This document shows positions 170 through 63,869 of a DNA stretch of 64,000 bases, in pieces. The notes under the pieces are model-generated. The model was not told where the DNA came from, made no database searches, and saw only the letters and a list, made by a program, of their open reading frames with translations. The stretch spans positions 7,672,889 to 7,736,888 of the forward strand of contig OZ037772.1 of the NCBI GenBank assembly GCA_964035545.1, in the 5' to 3' direction. How positions within the stretch are numbered: the stretch's first letter is position 1; every line of letters begins with the position of its first letter. The DNA comes from Bugula neritina. Lineage: Eukaryota > Animalia > Bryozoa. The position numbers and the translations under genes were made by a program.

Positions 170-2486
170 TTTTGTAGACGAGCTCTTGAAAATTGTACCT
201 AGAAACAATATATATTATTTTTCTTTGGGCATTGTTGTAAAGTTGCTTAGGATAAACTAGTTGACATTCTTGTATAGAACCCTCTTTTACTTCATAGGGT
301 GTAGAATTTTGAGGAATGCACAGCGTTGTGACTCTTGAAGTTTTAAGATTTGCTACTCTAATCACGTGATTCCCGTAGTCAGCGATTAAAAATGTGTCGT
401 TAGATAAGAACAGCATGTGTTGAGGATTTCGCACAAGCGATGTCGTGAAACTACCATCTCTGTGATCACCAAAAGGGCCTCCGAGTACAAAAACCTCTCT
501 GTTTCCTGAAATCACGCGGCTAATATTTTTGTATCGAAGCATAAAGACTTTTTTGGAATCAGGGTGAACGGCCAGACTAATGATATGTATTGTGGCAGTG
601 TGAATCGTTTCAATTTTCCATACATTTAGTCGGTCAATTTTTGAAAGTTTGCGAATACTTCTTCTATTATTATCGAGAAAAATCATTGCATTGGCTGCAT
701 AGTAAACTAAACTTGATATTCTCTGTATTCCTGCAATATCGATTGTACCATCCCTCTGTCTGTATTTATTGCACTGTCCGGCGAACTCAGCTGTTTTATA
801 CTGTACTCGATCAATAATTCGAATACAGGAAACATCACTGTCTGCCACCCACACTTTATTATTCATGGAAACCACGCCTTCAATCCTTCCGAATTTAGCT
901 AAACTGGTCACACCCTCTTCATAATCAGGTAAAGTCAAAAATCCACTAACTCGAGTCAGTTTGAAAAAATCTGGTGTTGTCAACACCGAGTATCCAACGA
1001 CAATTAGGTAGTTCCCTTGTATATGAGCGTCTTCAGTTATAAATTTTATTTTTGCATTAAAATTCCTAAGATTTTCTATAGTGAATCCATACTCCTGCAC
1101 AAAGTTTTGTAGTACTGCCTTTGTTCGAACGTAGGAAAAGTTGAACCTAAAAGTTAAAATTATAATATAGATTGTATAAAACGCCAAGCTTGTAAGATTT
1201 CTTAGTAATATATGGTGGAAATAAAAGATGAGAGTGTCAAAGCAAATTGTTTTTGACCTATGAGAGCGCTTTGTGAGCATACGAGAATAATGGTTAGATA
1301 CTTTATTATGGGCATATAATATACTATAGGTGATTTATCAACCATTTAGCACTCTATAATTATATGGAAAGCGACGTTTTTAAAATGTGACAATTGAAGT
1401 TTAATCAGAAAAAGTACTCATCAACCTCATAAATACCAAAGTTGTCTCAGCAAGAGACTAAAAAAATGTTCAATTAATAGCGCCACACACACACACATAC
1501 ACATGCGCGCATGTACCCTCGCACACACGCATGCACAGACACACGGGCATATACAAAATAAAACAATCTTCATCAAGAGTATAACAATATATTAATTTTA
1601 GAGGAAAACAAATAAGAGGAACAAATTATGTTACTTTTATAAAGCATATATACTTTATTCTTACCCCCCTGTATCGCTTTTAAGAATTGTCTTCCCTTCA
1701 GATAAGTATTGCACACTTGAGATCTGCAGTACAATACAAAAGACTTAAAAGTTAAATTGGAGTTTCTGATATGAAAATCACTTTAACAGGGTTACGACTC
1801 GTTGGAAACTGATATTCCAATTCCAATTAGCTGATTTGATTAACTAAACAATGAAATGTTCAAGAAAAACTTTTGGTTTATTTAATTTAAATTTTTGAGG
1901 TACAGAAGTAGGGAGCAGCCGTGTTCTAGGGGTTAGAGCATTTGCCTAGCTAGCATGCACGAAAGACATGGGTTTGAGCCAGAACTGAGACCATTAGTGA
2001 TGTTAGGGAAAGCATCATGTCATAATTGCTCCTGTACTTCATTTTAGTACATTAAATTTTTAGCCTGCTTTAACAAAAACCCTTTATATCAGGGGTTTCT
2101 CACAGAAATGGTGACCATAAACTTTGGTGAGTTCAGGATACAGAAATGCTTAAGCGTTAGCAGGAAGAATGGCTCTCCATGCTTTTCTTTACTTATTTAA
2201 TGTATTGTCTGTTATTAACAATAGTAACAATACAAGAAATGCTCACACTATTATGATAAACACTTTTGCATTCAAAATTTGACTAATAAAGCATTACTTA
2301 ATAATAATGTTAATTGTCAAATGCGGTAATTTAATAGTGAATATCTTCTATAATATAAACGTTTTCAAGAACTGATAAATCATCAACAACATAGCACATC
2401 TATTTTCTGATGAAAAATAGTTGGTAAATTTACATTTGACATTAAAAACTTACAGCTAAGAAGAAATGAACTATAATTCTGGCCAT
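170..2486 (-). CDS. N1: NHL-repeat beta-propeller receptor-like gene (5' part; stalk, TM and tail lie beyond the left edge)
   Basis: Exons 2486-2454 (MARIIVHFFLA), 1723-1665 (ISSVQYLSEGKTILKSDTG) and 1146-170 (NHL motifs AKFGRIEG, VWVADSDVSCIRII, HRDGSF..VRNPQHMLF..FLIADYGNHVIRV). All junctions are GT-AG with phases 0/2/1, as in the paralogs. Confidence 0.8.
1484..1552. repeat. Degenerate (CA)n microsatellite in N1 intron 2
   Basis: cacacacacacacatacacatgcgcgc... Confidence 0.7.
1910..2133 (+). mobile_element. tRNA-derived SINE, copy 1
   Basis: Head AGGGAGCAGCCGTG.TCTAGGGGTTAGAGC (A-box-like), GGGTTTGAGCC (B-box-like) and body ...CATAATTGCTCCTGT...TGGTGACCATAAAC shared with five other copies. 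Confidence 0.8.
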
Positions 2487-2744
2487 TTTTATAGTATAGC
2501 TTGCTTTTTCCTAAGAAGAGTCTAAAAGTTAGCTATGATATAATGTACTTTTTTAAACCATGTGAAATATTATGCTTTGTGCTCACTTCATGAGTGTTAG
2601 TATATATGCTCATTTGTATTTTTAGAAAATTCCAAAAATGTTTTGGCTATTGTTGGATGGCAATGGTATTTTACAAACTGATAAAAAAAAGACAATGCAT
2701 AGATTTAAATTATTTGTGTTCTCTAGATACAGCTAAATTATACA

Positions 2745-2893
2745 ATATATAATATATAATATATAATATATATAATATATATATTATATATAATATATAT
2801 AATATGTATAATAATATATAATATATAATATATATATATATATATATATATATATATATATATATATATATATATATATATATATATATATAT
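2745..2893. repeat. (TA)n microsatellite
   Basis: Degenerate then pure TA run. Confidence 0.95.
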
Positions 2894-2898
2894 CTCAA

Positions 2899-61791: not shown

Positions 61792-62240
61792 AAGTTGCGT
61801 TTATACCTCTGCTGAAAAAAGTACCGAGTTTAGGTTAATAACGCTTTTCCGGGTACCCCTTTATAGTCAAACTTAAACTCGTTGAAATCATATTGATGCG
61901 GTTGCTCACTTTCTGAAATTGAAATTTGACTCGCATAATAGCTATTTGATGCCCTTTGTAAATGTCGTGAATTAGTGAAGCGGAAAGCATAAAAGCGATA
62001 ATTGAGAAAGCGTAGGCTATATAATTATAACCGTATAAGTACGTTGTTTAATCGCCAAAGTAATAACTAAATAACGGTGTTTACAAGGAGTTATTACTCC
62101 TATTCTAAAATTGGCCGATTAAGTTATCACAGTACAAAAATTTCAACGGGTGGCTTTTACAATGCAATGCAACTCGGAGAAATTTCAACCCGGCCAAATT
62201 GAAATTTTGACCGAAAATCGTGAAGGTATAAACGCAACTT
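61792..62240. mobile_element. Non-autonomous DNA transposon (MITE-like)
   Basis: Perfect 17-bp terminal inverted repeats AAGTTGCGTTTATACCT and AGGTATAAACGCAACTT, with no ORF inside and T/A-rich flanks. Confidence 0.6.
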
Positions 62241-62916
62241 TATTAAAATTGTTTTTTAACCAAATGATGCAGTTGGGCAATCAATATTATCAACAATAAA
62301 CTTTATATTTTAGATAGAGACCTTATTTGTACTTCATATAGTTGCTGAAGTGCAGATCAAAGAAAATGTAGCAGGGTAGGTTAGATTTACATATTACGGG
62401 TTTTTTCTTTAGAGCAAATAGTTTATACTGTATTATAGTTTGCGTCAAGCAGCCAACTAAGCAACGCCCATTGATTTCATTCTCCGATTGTCTAAAAAAG
62501 TTTAAACTTTCACAACATGTTGAGTGGACAAACTTGTTCAATTGAACTGGAACTTTATATAGTAAGTTTTGGTGAATTGCAAAACTATTCATTCAAATAA
62601 TTTTTTGAGTTGATTAACTTAATTTATATTATAATAGTCATAGCGAAGAGAGATAAAGACTTCTTACAAATCCTGGCCTTAAGATTTATGAATTGCCTTC
62701 TATAATGATTATTTGAAACTCTTCAGTGCAACTACCAGCAGTCAAATTTGAGTCATTTTTAAACGTGATGATGTGAATAGTTTTTTGATTTTTTAAAAAA
62801 TGTAAATAACAAAAAAACCTAAAAGTCAAAACATTTTCTACTTATGTTAATAAAATCATCCTTGTTTTTAGATAGCATACATGCAGTTGCATAACAGCAT
62901 ACTTGTCTGGTTTTAG

Positions 62917-63869
62917 TGTGAAGTTTCTGAAAGTTACGAAGAATGATCTAACCAAACCTCCAAAAGTTGATGAAGATGCAGAATATTTTCATTTTACCAG
63001 CTTGACTGAAGATAAGAATAACCAAGGTTCCTATTTTTTAGCCAGCCAACAAGTGATTCAAAGCACTCAAGACTTTATTAGTTTTACAGATGTTGCTGGC
63101 TCACCACGTTCTGATTGGTACCAGAGTGGTACAGATGCCATGTTTGGAGAAATTAATGGGATGGCGACCACAAAAAGTTTTTCATCTAGTGTTTTTGTAG
63201 CAGATAACACATATCATTGTATACGCGAGGTGGTGCTAGAAAGAACTGAAGGGGTGTTGACATATTTAGATAGAGAAATAGGAGGAATGTGTGAAACCAG
63301 TGGCTCCATTGACGGTGCTCGTGGGATTGCTCGGATTTCTAGTCCCTTTGACCTAATAGAGGATTCTCCAAAAAGACTTTTATTTTCAGAAAAAAGAAAA
63401 ATAAGAACTTTAACTTTTGAAAAAAATAATTGGATAGTTGGGACTATCAGACCATTGAGGGAAGACATCCACAGACTTGCCATTCATCCTAAATATAACA
63501 CTATATTGATGACAACCATCTCGAAGATATTGACTTATGAGAATGGTTACGTGAATGACCTTATAGGATCATCCAGTGGACACAAAGATGGGTTCTTTAT
63601 CAATGCACAATTTGACAATCCACAGCAGTTACTCTTTTTAGGTGAAAAAGTCCTTTTGATAGCTGATAAAAATAATCATGTGGTGCGGGTGATAGATCTC
63701 AACACATTAATTATTTCCACCATATGCAGTCCTAAACCACATTTAGCAGCTGAAGGTACATCCATTACGGACTGTCAAATGAGTCACCCTCACCTTTTGA
63801 TAAATGATAGACAAAAGAATTTGGTTTACATAATTGACTCAAAGGGGATCAAATTTCTAAGCTATAAAA
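62917..63869 (+). CDS. N9: NHL-repeat beta-propeller exon (5' micro-exons not resolved; 3' exons beyond the right edge)
   Basis: Acceptor ttttag|62917 and phase-1 donor 63869|gtatgt. Motifs AMFGEING, VFVADNTYHCIREV and GHKDGFFINAQFDNPQQLLF..LLIADKNNHVVRVI. Most similar to N8. Confidence 0.85.

Follow-up and report, generated by a model that had tools for sequence, protein, structure and literature searches.

A large array of stand-alone NHL-propeller genes in Bugula neritina, predicted to encode type I membrane proteins, is old and conserved copy by copy

Does a tandem array of divergent, receptor-like genes in a colonial animal mark a fast-evolving immune or allorecognition locus, or can a stable repertoire take the same outward form? 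We addressed this question in the bryozoan Bugula neritina, for a window of 64,000 nucleotides (positions 7672889-7736888 of C8, OZ037772.1, in a 216-Mb assembly; AT-rich, with a GC content of 27-39%) in which eight mutually similar open reading frames (ORFs) of 283-372 aa each hold one exon for a predicted NHL-repeat beta-propeller. An earlier note, made from the letters of this DNA alone, had described the genes as cell-surface receptors with a split signal peptide, a propeller, a mucin-like stalk, a transmembrane helix and an interchangeable signalling tail, and had proposed a fast-diverging immune or allorecognition complex. Our analysis bears out a large family of stand-alone NHL propellers with stalk, transmembrane and tail exons, of which we found no description. 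It does not support the immune or allorecognition part, as the paralogues, judged by comparison with a sibling lineage, are ancient and individually conserved.

The array passes both window edges, as had been supposed. A family profile search of the whole genome returned at least 111 matches, with ~58 full-length copies at C8 7.583-7.972 Mb (~390 kb), six further copies at 8.71-8.73 Mb and a few singletons, and the family has at least 66 members in the genome. A more distant cluster of family-profile matches lies at C2 24.67-24.85 Mb, and other amplified propeller ORFs in the genome match only part of the family model. Within 256 kb of array DNA we placed 36 propeller exons, or one per 7 kb; the distal 135 kb of the array, like the other clusters, is known from search matches only. 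The count of eight intact units, one decayed unit and one propeller-less unit inside the window agrees with the ORFs, tblastn, transmembrane exons and splice phases, and a seven-copy tandem of ORF pieces lies just past the window end, after the last unit (at 62 kb).

The eight propeller ORFs (~315 aa, 27-44% identical) match one another at E 1e-20 to 1e-87 in pairwise tblastn, where identity is 23-45%, and an alignment of 33 copies contains exactly four invariant cysteines (C98, C116, C265 and C283) together with a handful of invariant Gly and Asp residues, in keeping with the single-exon propeller with four conserved cysteines that had been read from the sequence. The residue spacing suggests that C98 pairs with C116 and C265 with C283. 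The earlier note had left the six-bladed fold to be checked by structure prediction and Foldseek, and here it proved right. AlphaFold2, run on the 33-copy alignment for the unit at 25 kb, gave a model with a predicted local distance difference test score (pLDDT) of 94.4 and a predicted TM-score (pTM) of 0.91, in which 24 strands form six four-stranded blades. The best PDB matches of this model in Foldseek (TM-score 0.64-0.77) were the lumenal NHL domain of SOQ1, NHLRC2, a teneurin-like protein, TRIM71/LIN-41, TRIM2/3 and teneurins, and NHL clusters of the ESM Atlas matched it at TM-scores of 0.82-0.87. The family profile likewise matched NHLRC2 (E 2e-20), SOQ1 (5e-19) and teneurin (4e-5); single sequences score weakly against Pfam NHL, only 6 of the 33 members reaching E<=0.01. 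On these profile matches and the predicted structure, we assign the family to the NHL-repeat six-bladed beta-propeller superfamily (Pfam PF01436 / TEN_NHL PF25021 type). According to the strand order of the model, blade 6 would take its outer strand from the N terminus, and the two chain ends would exit on the face of the A-B and C-D loops; the stalk should thus turn that face towards the membrane and leave the D-A/B-C face exposed. Among the paralogues, all but three or four loops hardly vary in length, the net charge of the window units ranges from -11 to +13, and most copies carry N-glycosylation sequons. Taken with the mucin-like stalk and transmembrane exons described below, the invariant cysteines and the sequons are hallmarks of an extracellular domain and point to a location at the cell surface.

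To what extent the copies have changed can be judged from the published B. neritina assembly, with which per-copy identity is 71-92% and flanking introns align at 72-84%. These values indicate that the window genome is a sibling lineage of the published one, in agreement with the complex of cryptic species already known. One-to-one orthologues in the sibling lineage, at a synonymous divergence (dS) of ~0.43, exist for 20 units in all, among them seven of the eight in the window. In a tree of 33 copies and 23 database proteins, obtained by a quick search, 20 pairs of genome copy and sibling-lineage sequence were recovered with values of 96-100 in the Shimodaira-Hasegawa-like approximate likelihood-ratio test (SH-aLRT), on long stems with short tips. 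The paralogues share a median identity of 28%, so that the strong divergence of ectodomains between units claimed earlier is plain, and dS is no lower than 0.27 even between the most similar of them, where the ratios of nonsynonymous (dN) to synonymous divergence are 0.15-0.68. In contrast to a fast-diverging complex, all seven window orthologue pairs, compared at the DNA level, keep intact frames, with dN 0.07-0.12, dS 0.38-0.53 and dN/dS 0.14-0.32. Pooled dN/dS is 0.18 overall, 0.15 in the strands, 0.22 in the D-A and B-C (top) loops and 0.19 in the A-B and C-D (bottom) loops, and hence mapping of dN/dS onto the propeller, which the earlier note had proposed, brought out no faster face. Two haplotypes of the unit at 51 kb in sequencing run X1 differ at 3/434 nt in the propeller exon, compared with 10/353 nt plus a 37-nt indel in the next intron. 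Keeping in mind that the polymorphism comes from one individual and one 6-kb stretch and the selection estimates from one lineage pair, we interpret these data to indicate that the paralogues are ancient and individually conserved under purifying selection rather than recently diversified; one or a few hyperpolymorphic members may nevertheless exist. The dN/dS values of 7/7 pairs and the 20 one-to-one pairs likewise argue that the copies are working genes. The earlier note had itself held that one-to-one orthologues with a known housekeeping role across phyla, or low polymorphism with purifying selection at surface sites, would speak against its proposal. What we found are one-to-one orthologues within the species complex, with no known housekeeping role, and purifying selection at surface sites.

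The units of the window are as follows, with propeller exon bounds set by splice-site placement and the remaining exons predicted.

170-1146, minus strand: propeller exon of unit 1, seen as an ORF and in the family alignment, with a phase-1 GTAAGT donor; stalk/transmembrane exon beyond the window start; one-to-one orthologue P0046, 83% identical, dN/dS 0.26.
18588-20360, minus strand: propeller-less unit, with a transmembrane exon at ~20160-20360 (phase-1 acceptor, phase-1 GTGAGT donor) and a Ser/Lys-rich tail ORF of 209 aa at 18588-19214, in which no Pfam domain was found.
22198-26413, minus strand: 25-kb unit, with the modelled propeller exon at 25012-25955, a stalk and transmembrane exon at 24035-24277, tail ORFs at 22198-22867 and candidate signal-peptide exons, picked by eye, at 26342-26413 and 26073-26131; orthologue on the syntenic sibling-lineage contig L001, dN/dS 0.32.
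27373-31809, minus strand: decayed unit, with a propeller stump at 31579-31809 that keeps the N-terminal strand and blade 1 but nothing further (weak tblastn match at 31546-31740), a transmembrane exon within 30725-31057 and Tyr-containing tail ORFs at 27373-28167, in which no Pfam domain was found.
34793-40319, minus strand: 38-kb unit, with signal-peptide exons at 40299-40319 and 39991-40052 (conserved in sibling contig L025), a propeller exon at 38693-39636, a stalk and transmembrane exon at 38006-38284 and repeated KDYE-type tail exons, with internal repeats, within 34793-37211; dN/dS 0.15.
43246-44186, minus strand: propeller exon of the 43-kb unit; stalk and transmembrane exon at ~42046-42327; orthologue P0069, 88% identical, dN/dS 0.14.
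48220-49169, minus strand: propeller exon of the 48-kb unit; stalk and transmembrane exon with PTTT repeats at ~47106-47474; orthologue P0044, 86% identical, dN/dS 0.20.
51917-52854, plus strand: propeller exon of the 51-kb unit, the one with two haplotypes in run X1; stalk and transmembrane exon at ~53433-53669; orthologue P0109, 83% identical, dN/dS 0.16.
57646-58592, minus strand: propeller exon of the 57-kb unit; stalk and transmembrane exon at ~56747-57082; candidate signal-peptide exons at 59240-59275 and 58827-58888; orthologue P0055, 83% identical, dN/dS 0.21.
62917-63869, plus strand: propeller exon of the 62-kb unit, 44% identical to the 57-kb unit; candidate signal-peptide exon at 62314-62375; stalk/transmembrane exon and tail beyond the window end.

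All copies examined have the same exon borders. The propeller exon opens with a phase-2 acceptor (AG preceded by a pyrimidine tract) immediately ahead of the first beta-strand and closes with a phase-1 donor of the GT(A/G)AG type, one or two residues past the last strand. Six of the eight intact units can be examined for a stalk and transmembrane exon, the other two passing the window edges, and in each of these six a Thr/Ser/Pro-rich segment and a hydrophobic helix of 22-25 residues lie in one open frame 0.4-0.9 kb downstream, with an acceptor in phase 1 at the start and, a few residues past the helix, a strong donor in the same phase. Phase-compatible transmembrane exons, as a type I topology would require, follow 6/6 units, the join to the propeller being predicted. 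The decayed and the propeller-less units both retain the phase 1-1 layout, and the latter may be a separate gene or an alternative 3' end. A further stalk/transmembrane exon, just outside the window, is an open frame in both lineages, with an almost unchanged transmembrane segment and only in-frame indels, which are confined to its Thr-rich repeat.

At the other end of the genes, two small exons upstream of the 38-kb propeller together specify a predicted signal peptide of typical form, interrupted by a phase-0 intron, and sibling-lineage contig L025 keeps its ATG, the two splice sites and the frame; plausible split candidates exist in the units at 1, 25, 57 and 62 kb. The intron phases 0-2-1-1 given in the earlier note were found wherever splice-site placement allowed them to be assessed. 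Contig L025 has a further peculiarity at L025:2057-2146, where ~22 nt of intron after the 38-kb propeller exon (window 38678) are followed by the KDYE tail exon (window 36555-36637), which in the window lies 2 kb on. The contig thus skips the 38-kb stalk/transmembrane exon, either through a deletion in that lineage or as an assembly artefact; a splice from propeller to tail was considered for this junction and rejected because of the ~22 nt of intron retained.

Of the tails that the earlier note called unrelated and interchangeable, the first attribute holds within the window and the second is not borne out; shared tail modules occur only among recent duplicates outside the window. The predicted tail ORF of the decayed unit contains a match (LMYDEV) to the consensus of the immunoreceptor tyrosine-based inhibitory motif (ITIM) and the predicted tail of the 38-kb unit contains KDYE repeats, motifs so short that they are expected by chance. 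Long (TG)n/(CA)n microsatellites in introns and intergenic DNA (window 37056, 53838-54183, 56054-56323 and 60134-60679) give rise to spurious long Cys/Val ORFs.

We regard it as about evenly balanced whether these genes form a stable repertoire of ligand-binding receptors, comparable to sensors or pattern-recognition molecules, and this is the explanation that we favour. Each gene would encode a type I membrane glycoprotein that begins with a short signal peptide, divided between two small exons, followed by one exon for the complete six-bladed NHL propeller with its four invariant cysteines, one exon for a Thr/Ser/Pro-rich, probably O-glycosylated stalk plus a single transmembrane helix, and finally a disordered cytoplasmic tail with Ser, Lys and Tyr that would differ from gene to gene. 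The stalk would hold the D-A/B-C face away from the membrane as a binding surface. The paralogues would combine a rigid scaffold with ~70% of residues differing and, given also their range of net charge, each copy would have a ligand and a tail of its own and would couple the one to the other. Since the old paralogues persist under purifying selection as one-to-one orthologues, the ligands are probably evolutionarily stable, molecules of microbes, of the environment or of cell surfaces being more probable than allotypes that change rapidly.

Several observations weigh against a repertoire of ligand-binding receptors. Only part of the split signal peptide proposed by the earlier note stood, as heuristic and conservation-guided searches found no signal-peptide exons for the 43-, 48- and 51-kb units. 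The tail ORF pieces show no similarity between window units at E<1e-3 in blastp and contain no Pfam domain; their coding status and any role in signalling are accordingly putative. All three sequencing runs that we used (X1, X2 and X3) consist of DNA contigs, which leaves the exon joins and the tails as predictions, and public B. neritina gene models cover propeller fragments only, as single exons, one of them fusing two adjacent propellers. Finally, neither variability nor dN/dS marks any class of propeller surface as a binding site, and no result of the analysis points to the identity of a ligand.

The fragmentary public models and the origin of all runs from DNA would also fit an array of decaying or artefactual ORFs, or secreted single-exon proteins beside coincidental transmembrane exons, as would the truncated copy in the window and the seeming lack of the 38-kb stalk/transmembrane exon in L025. 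We nevertheless consider this reading highly improbable: purifying selection acts on all seven orthologue pairs and their frames are intact, the phase and position of the donor are identical in every copy, all six downstream exons that could be examined are phase-matched and carry a transmembrane helix with a strong donor directly after it, and a stalk/transmembrane exon is kept in frame across lineages. Allorecognition or kin recognition, in which polymorphic propellers would bind in trans between colonies or larvae and thereby govern fusion, rejection or gregarious settlement, has more of the expected appearance. The host is a colonial animal, the locus holds a cluster of type I receptors whose tails contain Tyr, along with orphan modules and one truncated copy, and the propeller is structurally similar to that of teneurins, whose extracellular NHL domain is established to aid homophilic specificity. 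It is in their evolution that the genes differ from this expectation, with a pooled orthologue dN/dS of 0.18 and no elevated surface class, with one-to-one orthologues stable over a dS of ~0.43 instead of lineage-specific turnover, and with haplotypes in one individual that differ less in the exon (3/434) than in the intron (10/353 plus the indel). Allorecognition is accordingly very unlikely in our judgement.

Ancient divergence, one-to-one orthologues and purifying selection on all surface classes form the pattern of a sensor or adhesion repertoire, unlike that of histocompatibility or fast-turnover immune clusters, and an adhesion code has to be weighed as well. Here, the paralogues would specify which cell types or zooids make contact, homophilically or heterophilically, in the manner of the teneurin NHL domain or the clustered protocadherins. 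Stable, individually conserved paralogues with distinct surfaces would suit such a code, and among extracellular NHL domains of animals it is the teneurin domain that comes nearest; a long mucin stalk, however, is more typical of sensors and of anti-adhesive glycoproteins than of molecules for tight adhesion, and we give the adhesion code a small though real chance. With regard to the favoured receptor repertoire, a bolder form can be put forward only as a speculation that we doubt, namely that the ~60 genes are the first identified recognition system of a bryozoan, one that would employ a stand-alone NHL propeller in place of Ig, LRR or lectin domains to read microbial, symbiont or conspecific surface cues, such as those of the vertically transmitted, bryostatin-producing symbiont. 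Within such a system, individual members or orphan transmembrane-plus-tail modules might serve as polymorphic or adaptor components.

Comparison with known systems sets the family apart from each of them. NHLRC2 and the NHL domain of SOQ1 (PDB 6gc1/6g7w and 7djk), the best structural and profile matches, share with it the six-bladed NHL propeller and the repeat motifs 'DG....A.(I/F)..P' and 'VAD..N..IR'; however, each exists in a single copy, joins its propeller to a thioredoxin-like domain and is not a type I surface receptor, whereas here a stand-alone propeller on a predicted mucin stalk and transmembrane helix occurs in ~60 copies. Teneurins (PDB 8r54, 6vhh, 8fia and 9ifo; TM-score 0.69-0.74) offer an extracellular animal NHL propeller that contributes to trans-cellular recognition, but the proteins that carry it are type II, very large and present in one to four copies, and also comprise EGF repeats, a YD shell and a toxin-like domain. 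The membrane orientation predicted here is the opposite, no other Pfam domain, including teneurin-type parts, was found in the propeller or tail ORFs, and the propeller is flanked by predicted signal-peptide and stalk/transmembrane exons. The propeller fold is also common to the TRIM-NHL proteins (TRIM71/LIN-41, TRIM2/3, Brat and Thin), which are RING/B-box E3 ligases of the cytoplasm with RNA or protein as binding partners; Pfam searches of our propeller and tail ORFs found no RING, B-box or coiled coil, and the invariant cysteines, the stalk and the transmembrane helix argue for an extracellular location, unlike that of TRIM-NHL proteins. The predicted signal peptide is a further difference.

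In layout the array resembles Hydractinia Alr, Botryllus fuhc/fester and vertebrate paired receptors of the KIR/LILR type, that is, tandem type I receptors with divergent ectodomains and Tyr-containing tails, accompanied by truncated copies and orphan modules. Those systems are built on Ig-like domains and show extreme polymorphism or rapid turnover, whereas here the domain is NHL and the copies are old, one-to-one and under purifying selection; extreme polymorphism or diversifying selection on the ectodomain, the hallmark of Alr and fuhc, was not found in the one lineage pair and one individual compared. Drosophila hemomucin also combines a six-bladed propeller with a mucin-like domain on the cell surface and has a proposed role in immunity or clotting. 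Its propeller is strictosidine-synthase-like rather than NHL, its gene is single-copy, and no homology to hemomucin turned up in any of our searches.

Relatives of the propeller exons are found in JGI and Logan assemblies and among NCBI Bugula neritina proteins, where KAF6021169.1, KAF6039484.1, KAF6033541.1, KAF6033544.1 and KAF6021168.1 are each named only 'hypothetical protein'. The first of these joins, into one 600-aa two-propeller protein, the orthologues of two array exons that lie ~170 bp apart (L017:5986-8263; C8, ~119-121 kb beyond the window start), and the pair is either a genuine member with two propellers or has been mis-annotated. A cluster member derived from ENA was rejected as a transcript since it is a metagenome scaffold. 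Protein searches by word index, whether started from one exon or from the family alignment, matched only ORFs of the Bugula lineage and bacterial NHL proteins, and in the ESM Atlas only bacterial or unplaced NHL clusters were found; an exhaustive profile search was dominated by giant bacterial multi-NHL proteins and is uninformative on other animals. As far as these sequences go, the family has so far been seen only in the Bugula neritina complex. Runs X2 and X3, which share organism name and study with X1, are ~9% divergent from the window in a propeller exon (window 57614-57879) and cover little else of the window at 90% likeness or more, and their source appears to be another cryptic lineage than that of the window. 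The B. neritina genome paper contains no description of the propeller family (PMC7576161). Our literature searches found neither a description of this family nor a stand-alone-NHL class of animal receptors.

The window is not wholly array, being interrupted on the plus strand from ~7.6 kb by what appears to be an unrelated DEG/ENaC (amiloride-sensitive sodium channel) gene. Its first transmembrane region (window 7591-7806) matches Pfam ASC at E 1e-6, and the gene probably extends to ~16 kb. It includes the ORF at 8891-10453, which follows that region and is 520 aa long, rich in Ser and Thr and internally repetitive, with no match in Pfam. A short repeat of very high copy number occupies window 57080-57480, at more than 1000x flank depth in all three DNA runs, with further copies near 1963-2131, 5440-5545, 12736-12898, 23307-23513 and 30139-30255. 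One of these copies overlaps a marginal tRNA match (12749-12807), the loose-end consensus includes a CTGATGG/A...GAAA string, and the repeat may be a tRNA-derived short interspersed element (SINE). An Rfam search of window 2600-3300 gave nothing but AT-repeat noise, and no hammerhead matched at E<=1 or at the gathering score.

To our knowledge, no immune, symbiont-recognition or allorecognition molecule has been characterised in bryozoans, a colonial phylum, and we know of no animal receptor class built on a stand-alone NHL propeller. The family described here is large, well defined and accessible to experiment, as its ectodomains of ~315 aa are each encoded by a single exon and have a confidently predicted fold. 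It also calls for caution in the reading of such loci: in one genome, a clustered array of divergent receptors resembles an immune or histocompatibility locus, and yet comparison with a sibling lineage indicates that, despite this look, the divergence is ancient and each copy is conserved.

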